The notes beneath the pieces were generated by a model. The model was not told where the DNA came from, did not search any database, and saw only the letters and a program-made list of their open reading frames with translations. The translations under genes were made by a program, and so were the position numbers. Shown here one piece after another: positions 14,336 to 52,460 of a stretch of 64,000 nt of DNA. Origin of the DNA: Thalia democratica (lineage: Eukaryota); NCBI GenBank assembly GCA_965202585.1, contig OZ241831.1:44020001-44084000 (forward strand), read 5' to 3'. Each line of letters begins with the position of its first letter. Within the stretch, counting starts at the first letter, position 1.

Positions 14336-15364
14336 ATGTCAGGTGAAAAGCAACTGAAATCTGATGAAAGTTTTGAAAGTGAAAACAATGTGGTTGTTGA
14401 AAACGATCCAGTTGTACAAAATGTCACAAGCAACCCAGGTTCTGCATCCGATGATGGAAACAAATCATTGGAGAATAGTGATCCGCAAACTAGTGCCCTG
14501 CCTTCTGTTGCCAGAAACAATCCAATTGAAAGTAATGAGTTAGAGAACGCTGAAACTAAAGAATACGGCGAACCAGTACCAGCTGGACGTTCGTTTGAAT
14601 ACACCTCAGCTGTGTCCGAGTTAGAAAAGAAAATGATAATACTGGAAAATCAGATAGAAACATTTGTGGCTACGAAACCTCATGGTGTGATTGATTCAGT
14701 TCGTATTAGAAATAAAGAAATAAAAAATGCCAAACTAGAAGCTGAATTTAAAATTATTCAGTTGAATCTTGCTGAAATAAAACTTGAACTCAAAAAAACT
14801 TCTAGTACTGATGATTTCCCTTCTAAAGATGCTGAGCCATCGACTTATAGCAATTCGGAGTTCCCTGCTGATCTTCATGCTAAACCGGTTGATCTATCAA
14901 CTATATCTGGTATACACCGTCAACGGAAAGCGGTAATTTTCGAAATGGACAAGAAAATAGCGGAGTTGGACACTTTAAATTCGCCACGACCTGTAAAAAA
15001 CATCCCCTCCGAAAATTGTCACAGCTCCAAGAGTTCTTATGCGAACTCTCCTTTCAAAACACCACCTACAGTTGAAAGTCCGACTAAAGTTCATGATCAA
15101 AACACCAGCTGTGTGACCGGTACACTTTTACTACCAAGGCTGATCGGTGGACGTTTTTCTGATGTTGCAGCTTTAAGACAAGTTAATAAAAACGCAAACT
15201 TCAAAAATGAATTTACTTTCTACCTAAGACTCGCTTTGTTCGTTGTTCTAGTTGTATTAGTTTATACTATTAATAAGGTTTTTTGTAACTTTTTACTAAC
15301 GATTGTGTTTTTAATAGTGTTTGAAATATTAATTTTGGAGGTTTTGATTTACAACAAAAAGTGA
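14336..15364 (+). CDS. Orphan family copy 2 (subtype B); a 1-nt frameshift after the TM gives a second hydrophobic tail
   Basis: 342-aa ORF with an acceptor AG ending at 14309. The tail FCNFLLTIVFLIVFEILILEVLIYNKK is the shifted reading of the family tail. Confidence 0.75.
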   Translation: MSGEKQLKSDESFESENNVVVENDPVVQNVTSNPGSASDDGNKSLENSDPQTSALPSVARNNPIESNELENAETKEYGEPVPAGRSFEYTSAVSELEKKMIILENQIETFVATKPHGVIDSVRIRNKEIKNAKLEAEFKIIQLNLAEIKLELKKTSSTDDFPSKDAEPSTYSNSEFPADLHAKPVDLSTISGIHRQRKAVIFEMDKKIAELDTLNSPRPVKNIPSENCHSSKSSYANSPFKTPPTVESPTKVHDQNTSCVTGTLLLPRLIGGRFSDVAALRQVNKNANFKNEFTFYLRLALFVVLVVLVYTINKVFCNFLLTIVFLIVFEILILEVLIYNKK

Positions 15365-16222
15365 TTGAGTGCATCCTGTTGATTTTTCTAGTTGATTTTT
15401 CTTAAGTTATACGATTTACAGCAATTCTGTTAAAAAATGTAATTCTGTTTTACCATGTTATGCTATGTTAAAAGTTATTTTGTTTATTTTGTGTTTAATA
15501 GCTTATTTTTGTTAATAAAAAGAATAGTCTATGCTATTGTATTATATTTGAGTATAAAATAGAATAAATACATTTGCGTTTTGCAATTTTTTAATAAAAG
15601 TTAAAATAGAAAATAATTTAGGCTCACTTAAATATCAGTACATCACTAAATGTAGTATAGTCAAACATAAATAAACTTTCTACGTTAATAAAATTATAAA
15701 TTTATATGTGTATATTTACAAATGGTTAATTGTGAAAAGAACTTGCAGGTTTTTTATGTTTAGTATATTCTTAATATTTTGATTGTATCATCGGATACAT
15801 TTAAATAAACAGCTCTTTAAATTTAACTAATATTAAAAATTTACGATAGTGATTAAACTCCATTAATTAAAAACTAATTTCAGAATACTGAATTAATACC
15901 TTGTTTACTGAATTAAATAAATTGAAAAAAAAAAAAAAAATATATAATAGTAGAAAAATAAACTCCAATGACTGTAACTTTTCTTTTTCTAAGTCAACCT
16001 ACATTGTTAGTGGAGAAGAATGCCAAGTTTTTATTACTAAAAAAATCAGTAAAATCCTTGGATTAAATTCAGAGCTGTATATTTAATGGTATTAACAATT
16101 ATTGAACCGAATTGAAGATTAGTTAAGCTTCAGTGTTCCATATACACAATTTAGAAAGTTAAAAATATGCATTACTTATATATGAGTATAATAATTGTGC
16201 CTGCTATCTAAATTTATCAATA

Positions 16223-16770: not shown

Positions 16771-17037
16771 TTTACTTTAAAACTCTTAGTTTTAATAGGA
16801 ACTTTACAAAAATAGATATATTTACACTATAAATAGTTGTGAATAAAAGAAGTTACGCTATTAATTTTTTCAAGTTATAAAATTTTATAATTCGACTTTT
16901 ACTAAAATAAAGGTCTCATAATAAAGTTATACGAAATCACTTTTCTTGTAGTCAAAGTTAACTTTTTGTTTTCAAATCTTCACTTTTTTATGTTATAGTA
17001 TTTTTTTACAGCTCTTTCTAGTCCATTCGAAGTCGTC

Positions 17038-18312
17038 ATGTCAGGTGAAAACCAACTGAAATCTGCTGAAAGTTTTGAAAGTGAAAACAATATGGCTGTT
17101 GAAAACGATCCAGTTGTACAAAATGTAATCAGCAACCCAGGTTCTGCATCCGATGATGGAAACAAATCATTTGAGAATAGTGACCCACAAGTTAGTGCCC
17201 TGCCTTCTGATGCCAGAGATAATCCAATTGATAGTAATAAATTACTAATTTCTGAAAATAAAAAATCCGTTGAACTAGAACTAGCTGGACTATTCCTTGA
17301 ATACTCATCAGTTGTGTCCAGATGTGAAAAAAAAAAGAAAATGTTTGAAGAGGAAATAGAAATATCTATCAATGCTGCAAAACCTCCTGGTGAGATTGAT
17401 TTAGATCTTATTAAAAAGAAAAAGATTGAAATAGCAGAAATAGAAGCTAGAATTAAAATGATTCAGTTGAATCTTGCTGAATATATTTTTTCTTTAAAAG
17501 AGAGTTATAAACAAACTACAGTAACAAGTTCCAGTGTTGATGACACCCCTTCTGAAGATGCTGAGCCATCGATTAGTATCAATCTAGAACTCCCTGCTAA
17601 TTTTCCAAACATATCGATTTCATCTTACTCCGATCTACACTATCAACGAGAAGCGGTAAGTGAAGAGTTGCTCAAGAAAATAGCGGAGATAGACACATTA
17701 AAATTGTCACGACTTGTGAAAAATATCCCACCTGAAAATAGTCACTGTTCTAAGAATTCTTATCTGAACGAAAGTTCTTCTCCGGAAACACCACCTGCAG
17801 TTGGAAGCCCGACTAAAATTGATGATCAAAACACCAGCTGTGTTAACCGTTCTAAAGAGAAACATCAACAAACTGAAACAACATCTTCTAGTGTTAAAAA
17901 TATCCCTTCAAAAGATACTGAACTATCGACTATAAGCGATCAAAAATTCTCTGCTGACTATAAAACTAAATTGGCTTATCAATCATCTCCCTCAGATACA
18001 TATCGTCAACAGAAAGCGGTAACTGCAGAGTTGGACAAGATAGTAGTTGAGGTGGACTCTTTGAATAAGCCACATCATGCTTACTCGTCTAAAAATAGTA
18101 ACTGTTCCAAGAGTTCTTGTGTGAACGAAAATTCTTCTCAGGGAACACCATCCGCAGTTGGAAGTCCGACTAAAGTTGATGATCAAAACACCAGCCGTGT
18201 TACCGGTAAAAATTTACCAACGAGACTGATCGGTAAACGTTTTTCTGATGTTGCAGCTTCAAGACCTCCCAAGAAAAACCAAATCTTCGAAAATAAATTT
18301 GCTTCTACCTAA
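17038..18312 (+). CDS. Orphan family copy 3 (subtype B, duplicated S/T/P module); frameshift removes the TM
   Basis: 424-aa ORF ending ...NKFAST*. The TM and tail are still encoded in another frame after about 18303. Confidence 0.7.
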   Translation: MSGENQLKSAESFESENNMAVENDPVVQNVISNPGSASDDGNKSFENSDPQVSALPSDARDNPIDSNKLLISENKKSVELELAGLFLEYSSVVSRCEKKKKMFEEEIEISINAAKPPGEIDLDLIKKKKIEIAEIEARIKMIQLNLAEYIFSLKESYKQTTVTSSSVDDTPSEDAEPSISINLELPANFPNISISSYSDLHYQREAVSEELLKKIAEIDTLKLSRLVKNIPPENSHCSKNSYLNESSSPETPPAVGSPTKIDDQNTSCVNRSKEKHQQTETTSSSVKNIPSKDTELSTISDQKFSADYKTKLAYQSSPSDTYRQQKAVTAELDKIVVEVDSLNKPHHAYSSKNSNCSKSSCVNENSSQGTPSAVGSPTKVDDQNTSRVTGKNLPTRLIGKRFSDVAASRPPKKNQIFENKFAST

Positions 18313-19959
18313 GACTCGCTTTGTCCGATGTTCTAGCTGTATTTGTTTATACTGTTAATAAAGTTTCTCACGGTTTTTGTACTTCCGATTGTATTTGTAA
18401 TAGTGATTATAATTTTGATTTTGAAGGTTTACAACGAAAAGTGATTGAGTGTATCTTTAATTCAAATGCAACTAATTAATTGGATCATTTTTCTTAAGTT
18501 GACTGATATATAGCAGTTTTGTTTAAAAACGTTATTCTGTTTTACCATGTTATGCTATGTTAAAATTTGTCTTATTTATTTTATGTTTAATAGCTAATTC
18601 CTGTCAATTAAATGAATAGAGCAAACCAAGTTTATGCTATTGTACAATAATTGAGTATATAATATAGTAAATACATTTGCGTTCTACAAATTATTTTTAC
18701 CTAAGTAAAAATAACTTAGACACACTTAAATATCAGTACAACTACTAAATGTAGTATTTCAAACATTAATAAAATATAATCCGTAGATTTTCTTTGTTTA
18801 ACTTTCTACGTTAGTTAAATTATAAATTAATATGGGTATAATTATAAATGTTTCTTAGAGAAAAGAACTTGCAAGTTTTTTATGTTTAGCATTTTCTAAA
18901 TATTTTGATTGTTTCATCGGATACATTTTAATAAACAGTATTTTAATTAAACTAAGATTAAAAATATACGATAGTGAATAAACTCCATTAAACTAAAACT
19001 AATTTCAGAATAGTGAAGCTTTAAATAAAGCAACACTCTAAAATTATAAAAAATTTACTTTGTTTACTGGATCAGGTTAATTAAAAAAATAAAAGTTATA
19101 TAGCAGAAAAATAAACGTCAATGAGTTGTGACTTTGGTTCTTCATTTAAATCAACCTTCATTGTAAGTGGAAAAGATTGCCAAGTTTTTATTACTTAAAA
19201 ATCAGTACAATCACTGATTAGATTCAGAGCTGTATGTTTAATGGTATTTGCATTTGTTGAACCGAATTGAAGTTAGTTATAAGGCTTAACTTCAGTGTTC
19301 CTTTTACAAAGTTTAGAAAGTTTCAAACATGCACTACTTATATATGAGTCTATTAGTCGCTATCTGAACTTATCAATACACAATGTTAAAATTACTGAGT
19401 TACTTTTTGTATAGACTATATGCACAATGAAATTAACGATATGTATTTTTGTATTAAAAAAGACTAAGGCAATATTAAAATTTTAGTATTGTATGAAGTT
19501 AAAAAGCTTTTTGTTTACTATTACACTCAAATAAACTTTTTAATTTTTTTTTAACCTCCTCAAAAATATTTTTTTTTTTAACCTCCTCAAAAATAATTTT
19601 TTTTTTAGTTGTTAAAAAATTATCATAATACTAATAAATTTATAAGATAAAGTCTTACAACTAAAAAATTTATCCTGCAAAAAAATTGGAAAATATTTCA
19701 TTCATTTTGTTTTAATAAATCGATAAGTTTTAAAAGATTCGGGTGTTTTTAAAAGTGTACTTCTTTTTATATTCTAAACTTTACTCTGAAATAAATTGAA
19801 ATAAAACTCAACAATAGTTATAAAAAACAACAATAGGTACTTGTTACAAACTTTATTAAAAATTCTTTGAAGCATTGCGACAAAAAAAAAATGCAATTTC
19901 TAAGTAATTATACGAAAACTGAAAGTTTTAAAAAGTAACTATAAGAGAAAGTATTTGTC

Positions 19960-22937
19960 TTATATTTATTTTATTTTAGTTATAAGACACAAAGTTTCAT
20001 TAGAAGTTTGTTAACATATTTAAAAAAATTTAAAATTACTGAAAAACTTGTTTAATAACTCTTATTTTATTGAAAAATTAAAATAGTTTTTTAAGCAGCT
20101 TGAAGATAGTAATTTTTCAGGTGTACATGTACAAACGATCAAATGAACCTCAATGAAATTTCAATGGTTTCAAATAAAGTTTGACTTTTTTTATAAACCT
20201 AATGATTTTTTAAATTTAAATTCGTGTGTAAATAAAATTATTCAATTGCGTTTATTTATTGTTATTATTGTTATAGTTGGTGAGCAGTTTAAAATGCGTT
20301 TCACTAAAACCTATACTATTCAGAAAAACATAATTATTTTAAGTTTAGTTGCGTGGAAAAAACGTAGTTAAAGATATTAAAATAATTACATAACTTGTAA
20401 TAGACTAGTGTTTTAGGCAAATAACTATAAGACTAATTGGGTTCAGTCTGAATGATTCGAAATCTGCCGAAGACGTTTTTTTATGAATTTAGACTGTAAT
20501 GAAATGAACTGTAATAGAAATATCGAATATTGTTTTCTATTGTTAAAACTTTAAATTTAAATTAACTAAAAAAACAAAACCTATAAACATTAAGTTCAAT
20601 ATTCCAGGTTTGAGCATTTTAAATACTAGTTCAGCATGTATTACAATATGAAAAATTTTTATAAATAAGTTAAGGGATATACCTGTCAATAAATAAAAAA
20701 CTTTAGTCCATATTTTAACAACTTTTTTGTCTTTTGTTTTATTTTCAAAGTGGGGTAGCACATACTCTACTTGTTTAGAACTACAGTTTTATTGAAAGAT
20801 GTTTTTAATAATGACTTTTATAAATTATGAAAGTGTTTACTAAAGTGTTTAAACATTTGTTTGTTAGAGCTTTAACAAATGTAAGAATTAAAAATGTTAA
20901 TTTGAAAATGTTTTTGGAACATTGAACTTTATTAATCAATACAGTTTCAATGTTAAAACAGTAGTGTCTGGCTAAATAATCTCAAGAGTATAAATAAGTA
21001 AAATGGAAAAATAAACAATTGTTTCATGTAAAAAATAGTGTAATTATATGTTAATTGTTGTCTTAAAAATTAATATAAAACAAAACAAATTATAAGTTAG
21101 AACGGAGTACTAAAAAGTTTTAATCAGATAATGTCAATTAAATAGTCGTTTGTGCTAAAACTTGGTTAAAACGTTATGACAAAATAAATTATAAGTTAGA
21201 GAAAAGATTAGAAAAATAAAAAACTAGACAACTGAGTTTTTTATATCTTTTGATATTGCTAGTGAATATTAACAACTGGTGAATAAACGTTTAAGTTTCA
21301 AACACAAGTTAAAAGAATTTGATTTAACCGTTAAAACTACAAATTTTACCACTAAAAATTTACTAGATTAAACTTTAGTATAGTTAAAGTATATTTAAGG
21401 ATAAAACAATGTAAAGTATTATATGTTAAATGATAAATTAAATTGACGTGGTTAGTTTTTAGTGAAAAAAAAAATCGAAGCTTTGAGAGCTAAAAAAACC
21501 CAATAAAAAGCGTGCAAGAATTTGATTTAATAAAATAGCAGAGTTATTAAGTGTAGTTAGAATATAAAAGTTGTATCACTTGGTTGTAATACTTATAATA
21601 TAATAAATATTCATTTATACCAACAACAACAGTTAGATATAACTATAACGTACTAAACCTAAGTTTTTAAATGCAGTACTCAGGGTTAAATTAAAAGTTT
21701 ATTAAATAGTATTAGATTACATGTTAAATGTCGGTTAGTTTAAATACAAAAATTGTATTTAAATAATGATCAGTTTACATTACACTAACATTAACATATT
21801 TACCAAAAAATAACTTTAATCAACGAGAGTTGGAAAATTTTAAAAGTTTTTATGTTATGTGTGAAATTAAAATATATATATATACATTTTTAGTATAATA
21901 TTTTCCTTGAAGAAATGAAGTCATACTTACTAATGTTTATATTAAAATTTTGAGCTTTTATTTTAAATGTTGTATAGTTAATACTTACTGATTTATATCG
22001 TAAGTTTTAAAACTAAAGTTTCTGAAAAAGTCAATTTCGTGAACAACTTGTTAGAGTTTCATGTTAATAGTAGTTTCATGGCTTTTATAATTTTGTGTCA
22101 TTGATAATTTACACAAATATTAAGCAATTAACTTGTTGAGTGTAAGTACGTAATATCTACATAGCATTAAGAAAACTAATCAAGCAAAGGATATAAATAC
22201 TACGTTATAATAGCATGTTTTTTCATTAGTTTTTTTCAATGAAATTTGATTTTATATTAAAACTTTAGACATAAATTTACAGGATAATACTCCTACCCGA
22301 GTACTTTTTTTTCAACTAAACAAAACTTTTATTATATTTAAAGCTTTATTTAACAATATTTCTTTACATTTTTTAGTGTAATTAGTTGTGAAAATAAGAT
22401 TTATAACATTTGATTTTTTTTTGTTTTAGATTAAAAATTGTTAGTTCAATAGTAGTAGTTTTATCTTCCTTGGTTTTTATAAAATTAGTTTAGTGTTTAA
22501 TGTAATTAGCTGATACATAAATACTAAGTTTTTTTACTTGTTTAATAAAGAAACTAAATAGTTTACACACTAAAATAAATCTAGCAAGGGTTTCTAAATG
22601 TTGTTTTAGTAGAATGATTGATTACTATTTTTACTTGAAATGAACTTTCATGTTAATTTGTTAGATACAAATCTGCAGCTTAATACTTACACTTCTATAA
22701 TATTTTTTCAATTGAAATACATTATTTTATTTCTAATAGATATTTTGCAAAAAGATATTTCTTTACAAATTAGACAGTTCAGAAAAAAGTGGTTCTGCTT
22801 TTAATTTCCTTAATTTTGTAAAATGTAGGCTTTTACTTAGTTATAGGTCTCATAAACAAAATACTGACTTTATTTTATGTTAACTTTTCGTTTTCAATTT
22901 TTCACTTTTTAAAAATTATAACATGTTATTTTTGCAG
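19960..22937 (+). repeat. Inverted duplicate of the region downstream of cathepsin L; upstream flank of copy 4
   Basis: Colinear with about 46070-49470 and reverse-complementary to parts of 1400-4400. It joins the 3' flank of copy 3 at about 19960. Confidence 0.75.
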
Positions 22938-22958
22938 CTCTTTGTAGTTGAGTTCGTC

Positions 22959-24035
22959 ATGTCAGGTGAAAACCAACTGAAATCTGCTGAAAGTTTTGAA
23001 AGTGAAAACAATGTGGCTGTTGAAAACGATCCAGTTGTACAAAATGTCACCAGCAACCCAGGTTCTGCATCCGATGATGAAAACAAATCATTTGAGAATA
23101 GTGACCCGCAAACTAGCGCCCTGCCTTCTGATACCGGAGACAATCCAATTGAAAGTAATGAATTACAGATTGCTGTAAAATCCGGTAGACTAGTACCATC
23201 TCGACGTAAACATCCTAAAATATCACCAGTTGTGTTTAGTCTTGAATGGATAAAGTTAACATTGTTGAACGAAATAGACAGATATAGGGAGATTGAAAAT
23301 ATTTATGCTCATGGTGAGATTATATCAAATTCTATTAGACTGACTTTCGGTTCTGTTGAAAAGAATCAGTTAGAAATTGACACGATAGAAAAACAAATTA
23401 AAAGGATAAAGTTGGCACATGCTAATCAAAATTCTGATCCAAAAGCGATACATCAACAAACAGGATCCGAAGATTTAGTTCCTGATAATATCAATTCTGA
23501 TGATCGTGATCCATCGACTAGTAGCAATCCAGATTTCTCTGCTGACTTACAAACTAAACCGAACAATTCTGCTATAAATCGTCATCAGAAAGCGGTGATG
23601 GCTGAGGTGCAGAATAATGTAACAGAGGTGGACACTTTAAATTTACCACAGCATAATAACCCATCTGAAAATGGTCAGAGTTCCAAGAGTTCTCTTGTCA
23701 ACTCTCCTTTCAAAACACCACCCGCAGTTGGAAGCCCGACTAAAGTTGATGATCAAAACACCAGCCGTGTTACTGATGAAGTTTTACCGCCAAGGCCGAT
23801 CGGTGAACGTTTTTCTGATGTTGCACCTTCAAGACAACCCAAGAAAAACGCAAACTTCGAAAACGAATTCACTTTCTACTTAAGACTCGCTTTGTCCGTT
23901 GTTCTAGCTGTATTCGTTTATACTGTTAATAAGGTTTTTCACATTTTTGTTACTTCCGATTGTATTTGTAAAAGTGATTGTAGTTTTGATTTTGGAGGTT
24001 TTCAACAAAAAGTGATTGAGTGCATCCTTAAATAG
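22959..24035 (+). CDS. Orphan family copy 4 (subtype A), intact, 358 aa from the ATG at 22959
   Basis: Acceptor AG ends at 22937, so the ORF-track start at 22923 is probably intronic. TM FYLRLALSVVLAVFVYTV plus Cys tail are present, with AATAAA at about 24177. Confidence 0.8.
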   Translation: MSGENQLKSAESFESENNVAVENDPVVQNVTSNPGSASDDENKSFENSDPQTSALPSDTGDNPIESNELQIAVKSGRLVPSRRKHPKISPVVFSLEWIKLTLLNEIDRYREIENIYAHGEIISNSIRLTFGSVEKNQLEIDTIEKQIKRIKLAHANQNSDPKAIHQQTGSEDLVPDNINSDDRDPSTSSNPDFSADLQTKPNNSAINRHQKAVMAEVQNNVTEVDTLNLPQHNNPSENGQSSKSSLVNSPFKTPPAVGSPTKVDDQNTSRVTDEVLPPRPIGERFSDVAPSRQPKKNANFENEFTFYLRLALSVVLAVFVYTVNKVFHIFVTSDCICKSDCSFDFGGFQQKVIECILK

Positions 24036-24497
24036 AATGCAACTAAATTTTTGATTTATTATTCTAAGTTATACGATTTACAGCGATTTTGTTGAAAAAA
24101 CTTTATTCTGTTTTACCACGTTGTGCTATGTTAAAATCATTTTGTTTGTTTTGTGTTTAATAGCTAATTTCTGTCAATAAAATGAATAGAACAAACCAAG
24201 TATACGCTATTGTACAATAATTGAGTATGTAATATAGCATTTACGTTCTACAAATTCTTTTTACTAAGTAAAAATAACTTAAGCTTCTTTAAATATCAGT
24301 ACAACCACTAAATGTAGTATGCCAAACATTAATAAAATATAATCCGATAACTTTCTACTTTTATTAAATCAGATTATAGATGGTTAATAATGAAAAGAAC
24401 ATGCAGGATTTATTCTATGTTTAGTTTTTTCTTAATATTTTGATTGTTTCATCGGATATACTTAGTTAAAATAAAAAAGCTGTTTATTTAAGTATAT

Positions 24498-26748
24498 AGT
24501 ATATGTAATTCAAGATCTTTTTTTAGAATGTTACTAGCCCATTTTGGGCAATAAATCAATGTCAAATGTTTGTAAAGGTCATCTTGAGAGCATGTAAGAC
24601 CTTTTTATATTAGTTGATGGATATCTTTAAAGGTTGAAGAGCTGCTCCAGATAGGTGGAATATGTCTGGCAAACATGGGGTCATACTTAAGATTTCTTGT
24701 TTAAAACAGATTTAACTAGATGGTTTGCCAGCTTTTACGTACGTCATTTATTGGCCAGATTCCGATAATAATCTCAAATTGTGTTTGATCATCAAAAATT
24801 CCTTGGCTTTTGCATTGAACCTCGAAGAGGCTCAATTCCTCTCTTGGCTTTTCCCCTGAAATTTTTCTGAATGCTTTATCAGAAATGCTATTTGATAGCC
24901 TCGAATTAACTGTTTGCTGGAAGTGTTGATTTCTGGGTATCGGATTGTGGTTGCCAAAAATGTTGTTGGTGTTAAGTTGGGTTGTTATGCGTTCGTGGAC
25001 AGGATTTTGGTTTATTGTCTTTTGGAGGTTGTCAGTTTGCCTTTGTAACTGTGCAATCGACTGGTTATTATCTTGTGGTTGACTTCCATTTCTTTCATTT
25101 GATTGGTCAACGTTTAAAATTGAATTGTAATTGCTCGGTATTGTGCAAGATTTGGACGCATGGCTTGATAATGGAATTGGTGTCTGGATTTTGTTGGTAG
25201 GTAATGTCGATACCGCCTCTGTTGTCATTGTTGGTTGTGTTTTTTCAGGATCTGTGAAATTTATATGTGAATTAAGATTATTAACTGTACTTACCTCGGT
25301 ATTTGTAGGGATATTGGATGATTGAGAATTCTGTATAAAAATTGTTTTTAAAATAGTATTAAATCTATCTTCTACTAGTTTGTTACTATTTTCTACTAAT
25401 TTAGTTCAATTCGATTTTTTTTAGTGTTGTCTTCAGTGGTTGGCGGATGTTCGCTTCGGAAGACGCCATTATTGTTACCCAGACTAAGAGCCTCACTGAT
25501 TTCCTTCGAAATTGCCTCGATCTCAGGCTCAACAATTTCATCAGATTCCAGGTTAGCAGTAGTCTCGGAAAAACTTATTTCGGTGCGAGAACGGGTTCGC
25601 GGCGCTTATAAGACTAATGCCTTTTTTAAAGGTTTAAGGACATAACTATTTAATTTATTTAACTAAATATAATGAAACTAAGTAATGTTGGTTTATTATG
25701 TACAAATAAACGCAATGACAACACACAATAAGTATAGACACTTAAAGTTAACAATTAGAAGGAAAACGTGCTCTGGATTCCCTCCTTGACGTGTCACTGG
25801 TCTCCTGTCGCTCAGTTTCTGGCACTCGACTTAGATCCGTCTCGTTTACAGAATCTTGATGAACGTTGCGTGGTCTGTTTTCTTTTCCTTTCCGTGATCG
25901 GAGCGTGGCGGTAAAATACGATATTAAATAGACACGACGATATAATATGTATAAATATTACAATGCAAGTACAATAATGAATAGATATGATAATATAAAT
26001 ATGTATAAATACTATGCTAGAATTAATGTACAGTACAAAAACAACTTGTTCGTAGAAGTGTAGCTAAGATTGACGCCCAGTCTGTGTGGGTTTACTTGCT
26101 AAGATGAATGTTCAATTTTATCTCTTTGAACGCTGTGACTCAATCGTGGAATCCAGCATAGAGTATTTGATGAAAAAGTACTTGCAGTACTTAGATTCTT
26201 GATGCCACAGAATGCGTGGGCTTCTTCGATTAGGTGGTTGTTGAAATCTTCTTGCTTGAAGATTGACGATAGTATCTTCTATCGAGAGTAACGGTGGCTG
26301 TTATTTCTTTTGCGGAGCAGAGTGTCGCTTCGTGCTTGTTTCGAGGTCAATTGCCCGCTTCATGCTCTGATCGGGCGTATTTATAGATTTTGAATTCTTT
26401 TTCTAGAATTTTCCATAAATCACGCGATCGCTCATTTGATTCTCTCATTTTCCTGGACTTTGGACTGTAGATCACTTGATCTCTCATTTTATTCTCTCAT
26501 TTTCCCTTAGCCACACCCATAAACAAGCTATTTCCAGTTTAGTCAAGTAATCAAAGAAAAAAATCATTTTAAGTAGCACTTATTTTGTTTGTGAAAAATA
26601 GTTTTTTTTTGGGAATTAGTTTTACTATATTTATTTGTTGTTGTTTTTTTTTTAAAGAAAAATATAATATCAAGTGAAAAACATTAATTCCTTTAAATTA
26701 TCAAAATTTGGACACAAGGCAAAATAAGATTTTGCACAAGTGTCCTAC
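24498..26748 (-). mobile_element. Decayed LTR-retrotransposon-like insertion with a gag-like ORF remnant
   Basis: Absent from the homologous flanks of the other copies. ORF 25228-24716 ends in PREELSLFEVQCKSQGIFDDQTQFEIIIGIWP, which resembles Gypsy gag N-terminal (DUF7041-like) segments, and stop-interrupted gag-like sequence continues (STFKDIHQLI*KGLTCSQDDLYKHL). A TATA-like CTATAAATA is on the minus strand at 26378-26386. No paired LTRs or TSD were found. Confidence 0.55.
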
Positions 26749-28009: not shown

Positions 28010-28466
28010 TCAGTGTCTTCTTCTCCTAATTTCTTGACTCAGCTGGTCCTTCAAAATGGCAGCCTGTAAAAGAAAATATTTGTTTATCAAAAATGTTTGA
28101 TTAGAAAACAACGGAAAACAAAAACTAAGTTACACATAATATTTGTGCTTATAAAAAAAACCTCTTTATTAATGATTTTGTAGGGCTATAAAAAAGAGTA
28201 ATTAATTCACTTGGCAAACCAAGCAAAAAGGAATTGTTTAACTCAATATAAAAATAATCAATTTAATTTTAAAGTGACGTCACAACTTACTTGTTCTTCT
28301 AGTCCCTTGACGCGCTGCCGGTGAGCTCTCTCGCGCGCCTCCGGGGTTTGTTCCGACTGAATCTGAGCCGTCCTCAGCCTCTCGATCTCCAGTTCCGACT
28401 CCTGTCGGTGCCTGGTGGTGATTTCGATCAGCCTCTTGGCGTTCGCCTGCTCCGTGTCCGACAGCT
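28010..28466 (-). pseudogene. Rootletin 3' fragment: last exon plus most of the penultimate exon
   Basis: Exon 28063-28010 reads AAILKDQLSQEIRRRRH*. Exon 28466-28291 is cut at its 5' end and carries R>Q and L>P changes. Confidence 0.9.
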
Positions 28467-28490
28467 CTTTGTAGTCTAGTTAAATTCGTG

Positions 28491-38663: not shown

Positions 38664-39514
38664 GTTTAAAAAGTATACTTCTTTTTATATTCTAAACTTT
38701 ACTCTGAAAATACTAAAAAAACTAAACAGTAATTCTAAAAAACTACAATAGGTACTTATTACAAACTTTATTAAAAATTCTTCGGAGCATTGCGACAAAA
38801 AAAAAAAACAACTTCTAAGTAATTATACGAAAACTGAAAGTTTTAAAAAGTAACTATAAGAGAAAATACTTGTCTGCAAAAAATAAAAGTGAAATTAGAG
38901 GACGGAAAACAATTTTCTTAAACTTTTCAGTCAATAAGCGCAGAAAGTAAATTAGGCAAAAATGTAGTGATGACAGCTAAAACTACCAATTAGAAAGTTT
39001 ATAGAAACTAGGATAGATAAAAAAAGCTACTGAAATCGTATATACAAAAATTTATAGTATTTCTTATTTAAAATAGATAATATAAAACAAAAAAAACGTT
39101 AATAAGCTTAAACAAGTACAAAAATAAAATAAACACAGTGCTAAAAACGGTTTGAAAAGGTGAAAGTAATGTAAAAAGTAAAAAAATTAAAGTTAGTTGA
39201 GGTCAACTTTATCACAGCCTGAAAGCTAGTATCGACAGCTTCGTTAACTAGTGTTTCGTGACGTCATATTTGAAATGTAGCGACGTAATAAATCCTTTAA
39301 CAGTGACGTAAAATCAGCACAGTAAAAAAAAACTCACAGCGTAAAAAATACAGTATTTAGTAAAAATATTCATTTAATCGAAACTCAAAACAAGTAAAAG
39401 TATTCAAAACAAGCTAATTTCAAAGTAGGTCTTTCGACAAGCAAGAAATGTAAGATTTTGATTCTAGTAAGCAGCCCTCGCTTGTACAATGTAGAACTTT
39501 TACTTTGTTTTTGT

Positions 39515-39547
39515 TCAGTGTCTCCTTCTCCTAATTTCTTGACTCAG
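39515..39547 (-). pseudogene. Rootletin 3' fragment: partial last exon and 3' region
   Basis: TCAGTGTCTCCTTCTCCTAATTTCTTGACTCAG, then an abrupt switch to the upstream flank of copy 8. Confidence 0.85.
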
Positions 39548-40880
39548 AAAATAGTGGAAATAGATATTATTGGGTAAAAGTTGAATTTAAAACTTAACAA
39601 GTTATAAGTTTTAATCAAAACAAGTTAAGATATAAAAGATTATATCTAAATAATGATCTGCTTACATCACATTAACTTTAACATAATTACCAAAAGAAAA
39701 ATTTAATCAATGACTGTTGAAAATTTTTAAAAGCTTTTTATGTTATGTGTAAAATTAATTAAAAAAACATATACATAGTTTTATTTAAAGTTTGCAATTT
39801 TGCTAAAGTCCGTAGTAATGAAGATACTTGCTAATGTTTATTTTAAATTTTAAGTTATTATTATTTAATATGTTGTATAGTTAATAATTACTGAACTAGA
39901 TCGTAAGTAATAAAACTAAAGATTCTGAAAAAGTCCATTTTGTTAACAACTTTTCAGAGTTTCTTGTTAATAGTAGTTTTATTACCTTTTATAACTTTAT
40001 GTATTAGATAATTTACACATGCATTAAGTAACTGTAAACTTGTTGTGTATAAGTACTTAACATCTACATATCATTTAAAAAGATAGCTAAGTAAGGGTTA
40101 TAATGTTACGTTATAATAACATATTTTTTCATTAGTGTTTATTTGATGCAATAGGATTTTATGTTAAGGTTTTACAAATTAATTTACATATTGATACTCC
40201 TACCTGAGTACTTTTTTTTAAACTAAACTAAATTTTGAATACCTTCTAACTTTTCAATAAAGATATTTCTTTACATTTTATATTGTGATTAATTGTCAAA
40301 CAGAAGTGATAAAGTTTGTTTTTTGTTTTGTTAAATGTTATAAAAAAACTTGTTAGAGTTTAATAGTAGTAGTAGTTTTTTATCTTCCCTGGTTATTTAA
40401 AAAATTAGCTAAGAGTGTAATGTACATACCAATTACTTTAACATAAAGTATTTATAATATTTTTGAATAATTTTTGTGTATATTATACATCTTATTTTAA
40501 TATAAGTAATTTAAGCTTAAAAAAAATAACGTTCATTTATATTTGACATTTATTTAAATTTCAATAAAATTTTAAGTAGATTTTTAATATTTAAGTTTAC
40601 AGTTAAAAACTCAAACTTGTTTACTCTTTGTTCTGTTAGGAACTTTGAAAAAAAAGATATATTTACATTATAACTAGTTGTGAATAAAAGCAGTTATGCT
40701 ATTAATTTCATAAAGTCATATTATTTTATAATTCGATTTTTACTTAAATAAAGGTCTGATAATAAAGTTAAACAAAATTACTTTTCTTGTAGTCATAGTT
40801 AGATGTTTGTTTTCAAATCTTTTCTTTTAAAGTTACAATATGTTTTTTTTGCAGCTCTTAGTAGTCCAGTTAAATTCGTC

Positions 40881-41918
40881 ATGTCAGGTGAAAAACAACT
40901 GAAATCTGCTGAAAGTTTTGGAAGTGAAAATAATCTGTCTGTTGAAAACGATCCAGTTGTACAAAATGTCACCAGCAACCCAGGTTCTGCATCCAATGAT
41001 GAAAACAAATCATTTGAGAATAGTGACCCGCAAACTAGTGCCCTACCTTCTGATGCCGGAGACAATCCAATTGATAGTAATGAATTACAGATTGATGAAA
41101 CTAAAACATCCGGTGAACTAAAACTAGCTACTCTGTTGCAAAAATTATCACCATCTGTGTCCGAATTGAAAAAGAGAAAGTCAATGTTGGAAAAGGATAT
41201 AGAGCAATTTATGGATGCTGCAAAACCTTATGATGAGTTTGATTTAATTTGTATTAGAATAAAAATAATTAGAATTGCCGAAATAGAAGCTCAACTTAAA
41301 ATGATTCAGTTGGATCTTGCTGAAGAAAAACTTGAACTCAAAAAAACTTCTAGTGCTGATAATATCTTTTCTAAAGATGCTGAGCCATCGACTAGTACCA
41401 ATTTTGAATTCCCTGCTGATATTCATGCTAAATCGGGAGATCTATCAACTATATCTGGTATATGCCTTCTACGGCAAGCGGTAGTTGACGAGTTGGACAA
41501 AAAAATAGCTGAGGTGTACACTTTAGATTTGACAAGACTTGTGCAAAACATCCCACCTGAAAATGGTCACTATGTGAACGAAAATTCTACTCCTGAAACA
41601 ACACCCGCAGTTGGAAGCCCGACTGAAGTTGATGATAAAAACACCAACCGTGTTATCGGTAAATTTTTACCACTGAGGCTGATCGATGAACGTCTTTCTA
41701 ATGTTGCAGCTTCAAATGCTCACATGAAAAAAAGAAATTTCGAAAAGGAATTTACTTTCTACCTGAGACTCGCTTTGTCCGTTGTTTTAGCTGTATTCGT
41801 TTATACTGTTAATAAGGTTTTTCGCAGTTTTGGTACTTCCGATTGTATTTGTAATAGTGATTGTAATTTTGATTTTGGAGGTTTTCAACAAAAAGTGATT
41901 GAGTGCATCCTTAAATGA
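40881..41918 (+). CDS. Orphan family copy 8 (subtype B), intact, 345 aa from the ATG at 40881
   Basis: Full ORF with acceptor, TM and Cys tail ending VIECILK. Confidence 0.8.
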   Translation: MSGEKQLKSAESFGSENNLSVENDPVVQNVTSNPGSASNDENKSFENSDPQTSALPSDAGDNPIDSNELQIDETKTSGELKLATLLQKLSPSVSELKKRKSMLEKDIEQFMDAAKPYDEFDLICIRIKIIRIAEIEAQLKMIQLDLAEEKLELKKTSSADNIFSKDAEPSTSTNFEFPADIHAKSGDLSTISGICLLRQAVVDELDKKIAEVYTLDLTRLVQNIPPENGHYVNENSTPETTPAVGSPTEVDDKNTNRVIGKFLPLRLIDERLSNVAASNAHMKKRNFEKEFTFYLRLALSVVLAVFVYTVNKVFRSFGTSDCICNSDCNFDFGGFQQKVIECILK

Positions 41919-44014
41919 AATGCAACTAATTTTTTGAATAATTATTCTAAGTTATACGATTTACAGCGATTTTGTTGAAAAAACTTTATTCTGTTTTACC
42001 ACGTTGTGCTATGTTAAAATCATTTTGTTTGTTTTGTGTTTAATAGCTAATTTCTGTCAATAAAATGAATAGTATAAAAAAAGTATATGCTATTGTACTA
42101 TAATTGAGTATATAGTATAGTAAATAAATCTGCGTTCTACAAATTCTAAAAAATTCTAAATAAATAAGGCTTACTTAAATATCAGTAAAACCACTAAATG
42201 TTGTATGCCAAATATAAATAAAATATGCGATAATTTTCTTTGTTTAACTTTCTACTTTAATTAAATTATAAATTTGTTTGTCTATAATTATAAATGGTTA
42301 ATAATGAAAAGAACATGCAGGATTTATTCTTGTTTAGTTTTTTCTAAATATTTTGATTGTTTCATCAGATACATTTAAATAAGCAGCTTTTTTATTTAAC
42401 TAAGATTAAAAATTTACGATAGTGACTAAACTCCATTAATCTTAAACTAATTTCAGAATAGTGAAGCTTTAAATTAAGCAATACTCTAAATTTATAAAAA
42501 CTTTACTTTATTTACTGGATCAAGTTAATTAAAAAAAATAAAAGATATATAATAGTAGAAAAATAAACGTCAATGAGTTGTGACTTTGGTTCTTTATATA
42601 CACCAACCTTCATTGTAAGTGGGAAGGAATGCCATATTTTTATTACAAAACATCAGTAAAATCACTGATTAGACTCAGAGCTGTATATTTAATGGTATTT
42701 ACAATTATTGAAACGAATTGAAGGTAAGTTATTAAGTTTAACTTCAGTGTACCTTATGCACAGTTTAGAAAGTTTCAAATATGCATTACTTATATATGAG
42801 TCGAATAGTTGTGCTTTCTATCTAAATTTATTAATACACAATGTTTAAATTACTGAGTTATTTTTTTATAGACTATGTGTACAATGAAATTAATGATATG
42901 TATTTTGGTATTAAAAAGGACCAAGGCAATACTAAAACTTTAGTATTGTATGAAGTTAAACAGCTGCTTGTTTACTATTACACTCAAATAATCTTTTTAA
43001 TTTTTTTTAAACTTCTTAGAAACAAAAAAAGTTTTTTAGTTGTAAATAAAGTATCAAAATTTTAATACATTTATAATATAAAGTTTTATAACTAATTAAT
43101 TTATCCTAAAAAAAAAAACTGAAAAATATTTTATTCATTTTGTTTTAATAAATCGATAAGTTTCAAAAGATTAGGGTGTTTTTAAAAGTGTAATTCTTTT
43201 TATATTCAAAACTTTACACTGAAATTAATTAAAAAATACAAAGTAGCTACAAAAAATCTCAATAGGTATTTAATACAAACTTTATTAAAAATTTGAATCT
43301 TTGCGACAAAAAAAAAACAACTTCTAAGTAATTTTTACGAACACTGAAAGTTTTAAAAGTAACTATAAGAGAAAATACTTGTCTGCAATTAGAGGACGGA
43401 AAACAATTTCTTAAAAATTTTCAGTCAAATAGCGCAGAAATTAAAATTAGGCAAAAAAAAAAGTGATGACAGCTAAAACTACCAATTAGAAAGTTTACAG
43501 AAACTAGGATAGATAAAAAAAGCTACTGAAATCGTATATACAAAAATTTAAAGTATTTCTTATTTAAAATAGATAATATAAAACAAAAAAAACGTTAAAA
43601 AGCTTAAAAAAGTACAAAAATAAAATAAACACAGTGCTAAAAACGGTTTGAAAAGGTGAAAGTAATGTAAAAAGTAAAAAAAAAAACTTATTTTAGTTGA
43701 GATCAACTTTATCACAGCCTGAAAGCTAGTATCGACAGCTTCGTTAACTAGTGTTTCATGACGTCATATTTGAAATGTAGTGACGTAATAAATCCTTTAA
43801 CAGTGACGTAAAATCAGCACAGTAATAAAAAAACTCACAGCGTAAAAATACAGTCTTTAGTAAAAATATACGTTTAATCAAAACTCAAAACAAGTAAAAG
43901 TATTCAAAACAAGCTAATTTCAAAGTAGGTCTTTCGACAAGCAAGACATGTAAGATTTTGATTCTAGTAAGCAGCCCTCGCTTGTACAATGAAGAACTTT
44001 TACTTTGTTTTTAT

Positions 44015-45592
44015 TCAGTGTCTCCTTCTCCTAATTTCTTGACTCAGCTGGTCCTTCAAGGTGGCAGCCTAAAAAAAACAGCAGTTGTTTAAAAACAGTT
44101 TTTTTATATCAAAATTACGTAATAGCAAAACTAAGTTATACATAATATTTAAGTTATTAAAAAAAAACGAACTTTTTTATTGAGATATTTGTAAAGCTAT
44201 AAAAAAATAAACAGCTGCACGAAGTAAATATTTAAAGTAATCAACTAATGTGACGTCACAACTTACTTGTTCCTCCAGTCCCTTGACGCGCTGCCGATGA
44301 GCTCTCTCGCGCGCCTCCAGTGTTCGTTCCGACTGAATCTGAGCCGTCCTCAGCCTCTCGATCTCCATTTCCGACTCCTGCCGGTGCCTGGTGGTGATTT
44401 CGATCAGCCTCTTGGCGTTCGCCTGCTCCGTGTCCGACAGCTGCTGCTGCATCGCCTGTTAGAAAGTTTGTTGGTGTTCTATGGTTGAAAATAAATTTTA
44501 TCTAGCTTTATTTTATTCTTTGTTTTTAGACTTATTTTAATATTTGAAGTATCAAAATGTTAATTTGCATATATTTTAAAGCATTAAAAAAAAAAGTTTA
44601 TTAAAAATTACACATTAGCTGAAACTACTTAACTGATTTTTTAAATAACAATTCTCAATTAAATATTTTTTACTTGTATAGTCTTCCTAGCATCTTCTAG
44701 TTCGCATTCAAGGTCTCTGCAAGATCTATCCAAAACTCCTCTGTCCTCAACAAGTCTCATCGACTCCTCTTCAGTCTTCAAACGTTCTCTCTTAACCTTT
44801 TAGTGTTGTTTACGATCAATTGTTTGATAAAAAATAACTTGAAGCTAATTATAAAGTATAAGTACTACAATAGGAAAGACCCTTTATCAGATTAATTAGG
44901 TTTTCGAGCATTAAAGTTTATCAAAAAGTAGTTAAAATGATCTAATTAGTTTTATGATAAAATGCGTTACATCATGATCTCATACTAAAACAGATTTGTA
45001 GTTTTGTTAGAAGGGATCTTTATTAAACCTATTTTTTATATGTAGTAATATATAGCACAAGTAAATGAAAAAAACCACTTACTTGACCAACTTTAAGTAA
45101 ATAACTTAATTGTAAAATATGTTTGGAGTGTATAATTTTAAATTCTCAAACAAAATGTTGTGAAATAATAAACAAACTTTATCAAGTGTCTTCTGCAGCG
45201 CGTTCTTGTCCTTCTCCAGTCTGACTGCTCCCCTCTGAGTTTCTCTCTTCTCGCTGTCCAGCTGTGCGATCGCCCTCTGAAGTCCCGTGATCCTCTCCTG
45301 CAAGATCCTCTTCTCCTCCTGCAATTTCTGGATCCTCACTAATGCCGACTGTTCCGCTTCCTGGCGCTTGTCGCAAACCTTCAAGTTTTGTAGTTGTTTT
45401 CCACAACAAATTTAAGATAATTTACAAAATTAAACAAGTCAAAAAAAATCTATGAAAGTAAATCAAACGCCGTATTTAGCCGTACTTGTTTTCAAATTAA
45501 AAAAATTAAATCATACAAAAGCTGTACAAAAACAATTTAAAAATATTCCAACCTGCTGCAGATCCTTCAGTTGAGTTTCCACATCGGTCCTC
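44015..45592 (-). pseudogene. Rootletin 3' duplicate: four complete terminal exons with intact splice sites plus a partial fifth exon (could be a usable alternative 3' end)
   Basis: Exons 45378-45178, 44796-44674, 44455-44267 and 44068-44015 are open and in phase. A partial exon spans 45553-45592. Confidence 0.85.
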
Positions 45593-45597
45593 CACAG

Positions 45598-46750: not shown

Positions 46751-49491
46751 TCAGATTTTACAATTTAATTCGTGTGTAAAAAAATTATCCAATAGCGTTT
46801 ATTTACTTATATTATTATTATTATAATTGTTGAGCTTTTCAAAATGCATTTCACCAAAATCTATACTATTTAGAAAAACGTAATCATTTTGAGTTCAGTT
46901 GCGTGGAAAAAACGTAATTAAAAGTATTAAAAACATTACATAACTCATAATGGCCAAGTGTTTTAGAAGAATAATTATAAAACAAATTGGGTTCAGTCTG
47001 AAATGTTCATAATCTGCCGATGACGTATTTTATGAATTCAGAAATGAGCTGTAATAGAAATAACAAGTATTGTTTTCTATTGTTGAAACTTTAAATATAA
47101 ATTTACTTAAAAACAAAATCTATAAACATTAAGTTTAACATTCAAGGTTTAATCATTTTGACTACTAGTTCAGCATATATTATGATATGACAAAATTTTA
47201 AAAGTAAACTAAGGGATATACCTGTCAATAAATAAAAATTTCTAATACATGTTTTTGACAATTTTTTTCGTCTTTTGTTTGAATTTTAGAGTGGGGTAGC
47301 ACATACTCTACTTGTTTAGAACTACAGTTTTATTTAAACTTGTTTTAATAATGACTTTTATAAATTATGAAAGTGTCTATTTAAGTGTTAAAGCATTTGT
47401 TTGTTATAGCTTTAACAAATTTAAATATTAAAAATGTTTTTTTAACTTTAAATTTTAATAATCATTACAATTTCATGTCATAAACAGTAGTGTCTGGCTA
47501 AACAAAATCAAGAGTATAAATAAGTAAAATGAAAAAAATAAACTATTGATTCATGTAGATAATAGTGTAAATATATGTTAATTGTTGGCTAAAAATTGGA
47601 TATAAAACAAAACAATTTATAAGTTTAAACGAGTACTAAAAAGTTTTGATAAAGTAATGTCAATTAAAATTGCAGCTAGTGTTAGTGTTAACATTTGGTT
47701 AAAACTTTATGACAAAATAAATTACAGGCTAGAGAAAAGTTTCAACAAATAAAAAACTAAACAACTAAGTTTTTTATATCTTTTGATATTGCTAGTGAAT
47801 ATTAACAACTGGTAAATAAATATTTAAGTTTGAAACACAAGTTAAAAAGAACTTGATTTAACCATTTAAATTACAAATTTTACCATTAAAAATCTACTAG
47901 ATTAAACGTTAGTACAGTTAAAGTATATTTGAGGATAAAAAAATATAAAGTATTATATTGTAAATGATAAATTATATTGACGTGGTTAGTTTTTAGTGAA
48001 AAAAAAATCGAAGCTTTGAGAGCTAAAAAAACCCAATAAAAGGCGTGCTAGAATCTGCTTTAATAAAAAAGTAGAGTTATAAAGTTTAGTTCGAATATAA
48101 AAATTGTATAACTTGGTTGTAATACTTATAATATAATAAATATTCATTTATACCAACAACAACAGTTAGATATAACTATAACGTACTAAACCTAAGTTTT
48201 TAAATGCAGTACTCAGGGTTAAATTGAAAGTTTATAAAAAAGTATTAGATTACATGTTAAATGTCGGTTAGTTTAAATACAAAAATTGTATTTAAATAAT
48301 GATCAGTTTACATTACACTAACATTAACATATTTACCAAAAAATAACTTTAATCAACGAGAGTCGGAAAATTTTAAAAGTTTTTATGTTATGTGTGAAAT
48401 TAAAAAAAATATATATACATTTTTAGTATAATATTTTCCTTGAAGAAATGAAGTCATACTTACTAACGTTTATATTAAAATTTAGCTTTTATTTTAAATG
48501 TTGTATAGTTAATACTTACTGATTTAGATCGTAAGTTTTAAAACTAAAGTTTCTGAAAAAGTCAATTTTGTGAACAACTTATTAGAGTTTCATGTTAATA
48601 GTAGTTTCATGGCTTTTATAATTTTGTGTCATAGATAATTTACACAAACATTAAGCAATTAACTTGTTGAGTGTAAGTACGTAATATCTACATAGCATTA
48701 AGAAAACTAATCAAGCAAAGGGTATAAATACTACGTTATAATAGCATGTTTTTTCATTAGTTTTTTTCTATGAAATTTGATTTTATATTAATACTTTAGA
48801 CATAAATTTACAGGATAATACTCCTACCCGAGTACTTTTTTTTCAATTAAACAAAACTTTTATTATATTTAAAGTTTTATTTAACAATATTTCTTTACAT
48901 TTTTTAGTGTAATTAGTTGTGAAAATAAGATTTATAACATTTGTTTTTGTTTTGTTAAAGATTAAATATTGTTAGTTTAATAGTAGTAGTTTTATCTTCC
49001 TTGGTTTTTATAAAATTAGTTTAGTGTTTAATGTAATTAGCAGTTACATAAACACTAAGTTTTTTTTTACTTGTTTAATTAAGAAACTAAATAGTTAACA
49101 CACTAAAATAAATCTAGCAAGGGTTTCTAAATGTTGTTTTAGTTGAATGATTGATAACTATTTTTACTTGAAATGAACTTTCATGTTAATTTGTTAGATA
49201 CTAATCTGCAGCTTAATACTTATACTTCTATAATTTTTTTTCAATTGAAATACATTATTTTATTTCTAATAGATATTTTGCAAAAAGATATTTCTTTACA
49301 AATTAGATAGTTCAGAAAAAAGTAGTTCTGCTTTTAATTTCCTTAATGTTGTAAAATGTAGGCTTTTACTTAGTTATAGGTCTCATAAACAAAATAATGA
49401 CTTTATTTTATGTTAACTTTTCGTTTTCAATTTTTCACTTTTTAAAAATTATAACATGTTATTTTTGCAGCTCTTTGTAGTTGAAGTCGTC

Positions 49492-50565
49492 ATGTCAGGT
49501 GAAGATCAACTGAAATCTGCTGAAAGTTTTGAAAGTGAAAACAATGTGGCTGTTGAAAACGATCCAGTTGTACAAAATGTCACCAGCAACCCAGGTTCTG
49601 CATCCGATAATGAAAACAAATCATTTGATAATAGTGATCCGCAAACTAGTGCCCTGTCTTCTGATGCCGGAGACAATCCAATTGAAAGTAATGAATTACA
49701 GATTGCTGTAAAATCCGGTAGACTAGTACTAGCTCGACGATTGCCTAAAATATCATCAGTTGTGTTTAGTCTTGAAAGGATAAAGTTAACATTGTTGGAG
49801 GAAATAAAAAGATATAGGGAGATTGAAAATATTTATGCTCATGGTGAGAATATATCAAATTTTATTAGACTGACTTTCGGTTCTGTTGAAAAGAATCAGC
49901 TAGAAATTGACACGATAGAAAAACAAATTAAAAGGATAAAGTTGACACATGCTAATCAAAATTCTGATCTAAAAGAGATACATCAACAAACAGGACCCGA
50001 AGATATAGTTGCTGATAATATCAATACTGAAGATCGTGATCCATCGACTATTAGCAATCCAGATTTCTCTGCTGACTTACAAACTAAACCAAACAACTCT
50101 GCTAAAAATCGTCAACATAAAGCGGTGATGGCTGAGGTGCAGAATAATGTAACAGAGGTGGACACTTTAAATTTACCACAGCATAATAACTCATCTGAAA
50201 ATGGTCACTGTACCAACAGTTCTTATGTGAATTCTCCTCTCAAAACACCACCCGCAGTTGGTAGCCCGACTGAAGTTGATGATCAAAACACCAGCTGTGT
50301 TACCGGTAAACTTTTACCATTAAGGCTGATCGGTGAACGTTTTTCTGATGTTGCAGCTTCAAGACCTCCCAAGAAAAATAAAAACTTCGAAAAACAAATT
50401 ACTTTCTACCTAAGACTCGCTTTGTCCGTTGTTCTAGCTGTATTCGTTTATACTGTAAATAAGGTATTTCGCAGTTTTAGTACTTCTGATTGTATTTGTA
50501 ATATTGATTGTAATTTTGATTTTGAAGGTTTTCAACAAAAAGTGATTGAGTGCATCCTTAAATAA
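49492..50565 (+). CDS. Orphan family copy 9 (subtype A), intact, 357 aa; convergent with rootletin
   Basis: Acceptor AG ends at 49470. TM plus Cys tail are present, with AATAAA at 50707-50712. Confidence 0.8.
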   Translation: MSGEDQLKSAESFESENNVAVENDPVVQNVTSNPGSASDNENKSFDNSDPQTSALSSDAGDNPIESNELQIAVKSGRLVLARRLPKISSVVFSLERIKLTLLEEIKRYREIENIYAHGENISNFIRLTFGSVEKNQLEIDTIEKQIKRIKLTHANQNSDLKEIHQQTGPEDIVADNINTEDRDPSTISNPDFSADLQTKPNNSAKNRQHKAVMAEVQNNVTEVDTLNLPQHNNSSENGHCTNSSYVNSPLKTPPAVGSPTEVDDQNTSCVTGKLLPLRLIGERFSDVAASRPPKKNKNFEKQITFYLRLALSVVLAVFVYTVNKVFRSFSTSDCICNIDCNFDFEGFQQKVIECILK

Positions 50566-52408: not shown

Positions 52409-52460
52409 TGACGTCATATTTGAAATGTAGTGACGTAATAAATCCTTTAACAGTGACGTA
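52409..52460. promoter_or_regulatory. Cluster of three TGACGT (CRE-like) motifs about 200-250 bp past the rootletin stop
   Basis: TGACGTCA at 52409 and TGACGTA at 52431 and 52454. The cluster recurs near 27754, 32383, 39259 and 43759. Confidence 0.3.

Follow-up and report, generated by a model that had tools for sequence, protein, structure and literature searches.

Mosaic paralogues with exchanged ends around two types of predicted helical hairpin in a tandem gene array of Thalia democratica

Birth and death, together with sequence exchange among paralogues by gene conversion or unequal crossing-over, shapes tandem gene families such as the MHC and KIR clusters, the globins and the opsins, and variable segments are moved by programmed cassette conversion in systems such as Neisseria pilE/pilS, Borrelia vlsE, trypanosome VSG and yeast MAT. 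The subject of this report is an array of nine paralogous genes from the salp Thalia democratica, represented by one array in one genome assembly and analysed in a 64-kb stretch of contig OZ241831.1 (the window, whose coordinates are used throughout). The array resembles the birth-and-death families in its tandem paralogues, in trees that depend on the segment chosen, in homogenised tracts beside divergent islands, in its mixture of intact and decayed copies and in short identical tracts shared by diverged copies. Unlike those examples, it consists of a gene family without described relatives, and its divergent island is one small helical hairpin (the cassette) found in just two discrete types, A and B. 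With the programmed systems it has in common conserved blocks around a variable segment and conversion that shifts this segment between contexts, but no expression site is set apart from silent donors: the splice acceptor, the ATG and the conserved N-terminal coding block (N-block) are present in all nine copies, four of which are whole genes. The exchanges are, moreover, old (70-80% identity) bar one short tract, and no initiating element was seen. The copies are mosaic, their ends are homogenised, selection keeps reading frames open and the variable segment is predicted to form a hairpin. The array has probably arisen by birth and death, combined with gene conversion or unequal crossing-over among the paralogues of a lineage-specific family of tandem, single-coding-exon genes, a mechanism that is ordinary for tandem families and involves no dedicated module-swapping system.

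The window is AT-rich (21-37% GC), and a 42-nt N-block pattern matches it nine times against an expectation of zero by chance; tblastn recovers the same nine copies. They sit within segmental duplicates of ∼4-9 kb and are arranged as tandem paralogues, with duplicated blocks up to 5 kb long that are 68-90% identical as whole blocks and up to 97% identical in single segments. All but copy 1 lie on the forward strand. The intact copies are copy 4 (type A, 22959-24035), copy 7 (type A, 34274-35341, 355 aa), copy 8 (type B, 40881-41918, 345 aa) and copy 9 (type A, 49492-50565), and copy 8 is the only intact one of type B. The other five are damaged. Copy 1 (type A, 312-1376, reverse strand; open reading frame (ORF) 420-1376) has a stop codon directly past the segment encoding the membrane helix, with similarity running on to ∼312, and a frameshift in the tail beyond this helix gives copy 2 (type B, 14336-15378) an altered C-terminus. 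Copy 3 (type B, 17038-18458) contains an internal duplication (17497-17845 and 17854-18202) in the C-terminal coding block (C-block), and its ORF is cut short at 18312 through a 1-nt deletion immediately ahead of the membrane helix. An in-frame stop and shifts of frame disrupt copy 5 (type B, 28491-29882), and copy 6 (type A, 31053-31571) is a frameshifted 5′ fragment comprising only N-block and cassette. Copies 3 and 5, both of type B, have in common an internal tandem duplication of the initial part of the C-block (17497-18202 and 28941-29549), with repeats ∼70% identical, which suggests that the duplication is older than the split of these two copies.

The central observation is that trees built from different segments of the copies conflict. 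The cassette tree (alignment columns 2232-2440) separates copies 1, 4, 6, 7, and 9 (type A) from copies 2, 3, 5, and 8 (type B) with support of 100/100, and fixed differences between the types are confined to columns 2200-2500, so that the assignment of copies to types made in a first-pass annotation of this DNA is borne out. That annotation had also claimed that the upstream flank of copy 7 (A) matches that of copy 2 (B), that the flank of copy 8 (B) starts like those of copies 4 and 9 (A), and that cassette and flank are consequently unlinked, and all of this was recovered. The nearest relative of the copy 2 flank (13101-14335) is the flank of copy 7 (33052-34273), the two pairing at 100/100 in the upstream-flank tree; in blastn comparisons, flank and N-block of copy 2 (13101-14663) best match copy 7 (33052-34595) at 77%, versus ∼70% for copies 4 and 9. 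The distal flank of copy 8 is grouped with copies 1, 4, and 9, again at 100/100. In the approximately unbiased (AU) test each segment rejects the tree of the other: the flank rejects the cassette topology with its grouping of A copies (p = 4.7e-8), and the cassette rejects the flank topology with its pairing of copies 2 and 7 (p = 7e-8). Monophyly of the A copies is likewise rejected for the 5′ untranslated region (UTR), N-block and linker taken together (p = 0.013), and a permutation test of the pairwise homoplasy index (PHI) type gives p ≤ 0.001 in three taxon sets.

Within the genes, the N-block tree contains a cross-type pair of copies 1 (A) and 2 (B) (92/94), and in the C-block tree copy 1 falls among the B copies (93/95). 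Phylogenies by segment, named in the first-pass annotation as a check, accordingly gave no single topology across flank, N-block, cassette and C-block. A nearest-neighbour map shows every copy changing partner between segments. Copy 2 is the plainest mosaic, its flank being closest to copy 7, its N-block and linker to copy 1, and its cassette and C-block to copy 8, with ∼30 sites unique to copies 2 and 7 in the flank and ∼19 unique to copies 2 and 8 in the gene body. Copy 1 carries an A cassette, yet its N-block and linker are nearest those of copy 2, a B copy.

Exchange extends to the 3′ side. Copy 4 is the sister of copy 9 through the stop codon (97% identity in the flank), after which its 3′ UTR matches copy 8. 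The match includes an exact tract of 132 bp (24058-24189 in copy 4, type A, and 41941-42072 in copy 8, type B, both on the forward strand), where copy 9 departs from both sequences at 17 sites. Nowhere in their shared 4.3-kb unit do copies 4 and 9 match exactly over so long a run. The 132-bp tract is a recent cross-type conversion tract. The downstream flanks of copies 7 and 9 are 92-94% identical over the whole segment and up to 98% in single 200-column windows, and their upstream flanks are ∼70% identical. The units of copies 4 and 9 (20208-24494 and 46756-51057) are the youngest of the array and show a reversal of the usual pattern, the noncoding flank being 97% and the coding sequence 89-95% identical. 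Their coding synonymous divergence (dS) of ∼0.09, compared with a flank divergence of ∼3%, fits the import of coding sequence from other copies.

The 5′ ends of the genes are homogenised. The tract formed by the acceptor and the N-block (codons 1-67; 34239-34474, forward strand, in copy 7) is 88-96% identical across the nine copies irrespective of type, and dS in the N-block is 0.05-0.18 in all pairs and ∼0.07 in most comparisons of A with B. Cassette dS reaches 0.26-0.44 within types (0.02 between copies 4 and 9) and 0.48-0.64 between A and B, and C-block dS is 0.20-0.46 (0.11 between copies 4 and 9). Outside the array, the only relative detected is one of the N-block, in two short environmental contigs of 24% GC from ENA metagenome assemblies ERZ17174913 and ERZ27291288 (L001, positions 1-812, and L002, positions 1-746, respectively), which have a similar CAG acceptor and share 72% DNA and 40-55% protein identity with the array; both are too short to reveal any cassette. 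Since this relative is only 72% identical in DNA, the N-block is evidently able to drift, and its near-identity within the array is best explained by concerted evolution through gene conversion rather than by constraint alone. The environmental N-block has a 78-nt tandem duplication of its own (442-519 and 523-600), after which the frame enters AT-rich sequence.

It had been proposed that the N-block acts as a conversion anchor. This holds insofar as the N-block and the acceptor form a homogenised tract, with dS far below the 0.26-0.64 of the cassette, in which copies of different type can pair most closely. It does not hold insofar as the N-block is not special, the membrane helix, tail, 3′ UTR and downstream flank having been exchanged equally, including the 132-bp tract described above. 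Exchange has affected sequence to either side of the cassette, flanks included, and is therefore not tied to the N-block.

Type A cassettes lie at 34550-34756 in copy 7, 918-1104 (reverse strand) in copy 1, 23238-23444 in copy 4, 31342-31544 in copy 6 and 49768-49974 in copy 9, and type B cassettes at 41163-41342 in copy 8, 14618-14794 in copy 2, 17320-17499 in copy 3 and 28770-28948 in copy 5. The statement in the first-pass annotation that the two types share only a helix-loop-helix periodicity proved wrong. Their DNA is alignable over both halves of the cassette, the differences consisting of substitutions together with indels of 6 nt and 21 nt that leave B 27 nt shorter; the first helix shows 47% protein identity between types (E = 2e-6), and for most pairs both halves score z ∼3-7 above codon-shuffled controls. 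The DNA alignment, the identity of the first helix and the scores above shuffled controls together show that A and B are old, diverged homologues and not unrelated alternative modules. Each type nonetheless has a conserved motif of its own, G-S-V-E-K-N in A and I-Q-L-x-L-A-E in B.

The encoded protein begins with an acidic, disordered head, followed by the helical hairpin, a Ser/Pro-rich disordered spacer, a single C-terminal membrane helix and a Cys-rich tail. The head (residues 1-70; D/E 14 versus K/R 4) is predicted to be disordered, with a predicted local distance difference test score (pLDDT) of <40. The hairpin helices are predicted at residues 81-115 and 121-168 in copy 7 (A) and at 67-112 and 119-157 in copy 8 (B), with pLDDT ∼90 for the helices and ∼70 for the loop in both types, as the first-pass annotation had anticipated in proposing a hairpin. 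Antiparallel hairpins make up all of the top structural matches, which upholds the reading as a hairpin, and both types are predicted to be antiparallel helical hairpins of a generic fold. A third helix within the spacer is confidently predicted in B (191-214, pLDDT 88-90) and poorly so in A (199-223), where pLDDT is <50 save at two residues. The sole strongly hydrophobic segment lies at ∼301-325 of the 355 residues of copy 7, and the N-terminus is devoid of any such segment, a layout which points to a tail-anchored membrane topology. Beyond the membrane helix are 33 residues with 4-5 cysteines, and the intact copies end in E/G-C-I-L-K.

A polypyrimidine-CAG acceptor is found ∼27 nt ahead of the ATG in all nine copies, and the ATG context is also kept. 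The position of the acceptor indicates that the coding part is a single exon behind a splice site. Tunicates are known to trans-splice spliced leaders (PMC5174732), and the conserved acceptor may plausibly serve for the addition of a spliced leader or of a 5′ exon. As a guess from the predicted layout, the protein might be a membrane-tethered adaptor, the hairpin of which binds a partner or oligomerises.

Searches for relatives and for known domains were largely negative. When six family proteins and an unrelated ORF were scanned against Pfam, the best match had E = 0.08 and all matches fell far short of the curated cut-offs, and the hairpin of the six family proteins matched no Pfam family at E ≤ 1. 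A sequence search of the PDB gave no match at E ≤ 10, a word-index protein search with copy 7 gave no match, and none of ten ORF variants was present in the protein collection by exact look-up. A profile search of 1.84 billion representative proteins detected no full-length relative and returned two matches, one of them a 108-aa fragment that aligns to the N-block only and that, in a word search of its own, matched only itself. The other was a protocadherin-like repeat protein, a spurious match made via the membrane helix. Scans of metagenome contigs with a protein pattern and with a DNA pattern gave no matches. The gene family is apparently lineage-restricted and, as far as sequence comparison can tell, new to the databases searched.

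In structural comparison, Foldseek returned nothing below E = 0.2 against the PDB, and VIA-align found only generic hairpins and three-helix bundles at Z ≤ 9.8, which is below a meaningful level for helical folds; 85 unrelated chains scored Z ≥ 8, among them ESCRT-III hairpins, prefoldin, Mediator subunits and designed hairpins. With its third helix included, the B model shows a weak likeness to the three-helix bundles of BAR, bMERB and syntaxin Habc (Z ≤ 9.5), which is generic for helical proteins. Syntaxin Habc and Sso1 are among these weak matches of type B, and assignment to the syntaxin/SNARE proteins was rejected, there being no SNARE motif and no profile match.

Type A had been said to recall HR1, the Rho-binding finger of PKN1, which is an antiparallel two-helix hairpin of similar length to that predicted here. 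Membership fails on sequence, HR1 (PF02185) giving no profile match at E ≤ 1. As to fold, the HR1b domain of PKN1 ranked only 24th with Foldseek, at a non-significant E = 1.5 and a root-mean-square deviation of 3.7 Å over 61 columns, amid hundreds of generic hairpins. The overall layout had been compared to LRMP/Jaw1, and it is indeed shared with LRMP/Jaw1/IRAG and KASH proteins in that a helical or coiled-coil region in the cytosol is followed by a single membrane helix near the C-terminus and by ∼30 aa of luminal tail. The likeness is one of layout only: the array protein is much shorter, LRMP/Jaw1/IRAG membership fails for want of a profile match to MRVI1 (PF05781) at E ≤ 1 or a PDB sequence match at E ≤ 10, and KASH (PF10541) is rejected because there is no Pfam match and the tail ends in C-I-L-K and not in PPPX.

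Selection was assessed from the ratio of nonsynonymous to synonymous substitution rates (omega) and from the state of the reading frames. Pairwise omega is near 1 in cassette and C-block, within types as well as between them, ∼0.5-0.6 in the N-block, and 0.16-0.28 in the membrane helix and tail when copy 8 is compared with copies 4 and 9. The codon-model values are 1.30 (cassette), 1.10 (C-block), 0.72 (N-block) and 0.71 (membrane helix and tail), and in no segment is omega significantly different from 1. Between copies 4 and 9 the cassette has accumulated 10 replacement changes versus 1 silent change, and omega over the whole gene is ∼0.8. The four open ORFs, of 345-358 codons, persist at 7.5-24% nucleotide divergence, and all indels between intact copies are in frame. 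With substitutions alone, the probability that the intact ORFs would have stayed open is ≤0.02 for copies 4 and 9 and ≤2e-4 for the other intact pairs; such low probabilities under neutrality imply that the intact copies are under selection to stay open. Most residues are weakly constrained or under mixed pressures, and positive selection on the cassette is not demonstrated by these comparisons. The description of the cassettes as specificity modules was therefore not borne out, a cassette omega of 1.3 being no different from 1 and five of the nine copies being damaged.

Birth and death with exchange between paralogues accounts well for this combination of features and is considered the likely history of the array. 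Selection would hold four copies open while five decay, and non-allelic conversion or unequal crossing-over between misaligned units would repeatedly swap the flanks, the acceptor with the N-block, and the membrane helix, tail and 3′ UTR. Through such repeated exchange of ends each copy would become a patchwork whose nearest relative changes by segment. The cassettes, which are 55-65% identical, are likely too diverged for conversion tracts to cross, and the two types would persist; selection for two cassette variants is possible. Certain points weigh against this explanation. The AU test of the B-like placement of copy 1 in the C-block is marginal (p = 0.067-0.079), segment boundaries were picked after the alignment had been viewed, so that the smaller p-values are partly post hoc, and the entire basis is a single array in a single genome assembly. 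Furthermore, an omega of ∼1 beside maintained ORFs is not fully explained. Diversifying and purifying selection acting together could lie behind this value, in which case a more functional reading of the split between A and B would be favoured. Conflict between trees might also arise from misalignment, rate heterogeneity or repeats assembled into chimeras, and the AT-rich, gappy flanks and the single assembly lend themselves to such a view. It is highly improbable that artefact rather than recombination is responsible, however, given the reciprocal AU rejections (p ∼1e-8), the sites shared exclusively by copy 2 with copy 7 in the flank and with copy 8 in the gene body, differences of 10-40% between copies, which are far beyond assembler confusion, and blastn best matches that switch likewise and are independent of MAFFT.

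A functional system of exchangeable modules is the model of the first-pass annotation. In this account A and B are selected specificity modules, and the N-block is a dedicated anchor at which recombination or conversion transfers them from one regulatory context to another. The persistence of two discrete types, each with four copies or more, despite exchange to either side, the homogenised N-block and acceptor, the type-specific motifs and a cassette omega of 1.3-1.4, compatible with some diversifying selection, speak for it. Equal exchange of the 3′ end and flanks, an omega that departs significantly from 1 in no segment and is ∼1 within types, the survival of just one intact B copy and the homology of A and B speak against it, and the account is judged unlikely. 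Similarly doubtful is the proposition that selection maintains A and B as two functionally distinct modules for binding or oligomerisation on a shared tail-anchor scaffold, which conversion at the homogenised ends repeatedly re-pairs with different regulatory flanks; if true, the array would be a 'two-cassette' system of germline diversification in an orphan gene family of a chordate. At the other extreme, the array might be decaying and without present function, its open frames being young relics and its mosaic structure the neutral noise of a repeat cluster. Stops, frameshifts or truncations in five of nine copies, omega ∼1 throughout and the lack of a full-length relative among the proteins searched agree with this, but it is very unlikely when set against four ORFs that have stayed open (neutral P from ≤0.02 to <2e-4), indels that are without exception in frame among the intact copies, the low omega of the membrane helix and tail (0.16-0.28 for copy 8 versus copies 4 and 9), and an acceptor and ATG context kept in all copies.

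Several further features lie in the window. In copy 5 the usual AT-rich upstream flank is replaced at 28280-28490 by GC-rich sequence derived from a rootletin exon, which abuts the splice acceptor. The last rootletin exons have travelled with an array unit (44177-45384 and 52876-54013, reverse strand), the block 40631-45596 repeating 49264-54290 at 83%, and shorter copies of the rootletin-proximal segment are located at 26752-28466, 31572-33030, and 38665-39547. Between copies 1 and 2 are exons of a papain-family (cathepsin L-like) cysteine protease (5440-7760, reverse strand), with one ORF piece containing the active-site motif and another a propeptide-like segment. An insertion after the unit of copy 4 contains a 170-aa Q/N/S-rich ORF without Pfam match (24716-25228, reverse strand). 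In several copies there is also an open frame of 56-139 codons antisense to the N-block (14275-14604, 16980-17372, 28280-28699, and 49506-49676, reverse strand).

The array thus provides a clean, well-resolved case of gene conversion or unequal crossing-over building patchwork paralogues, and as the mechanism is a textbook one, its interest is chiefly descriptive. Should the two hairpin types prove to have different partners, however, the array would serve as a useful natural experiment in how barriers to recombination maintain functional variants within gene clusters.

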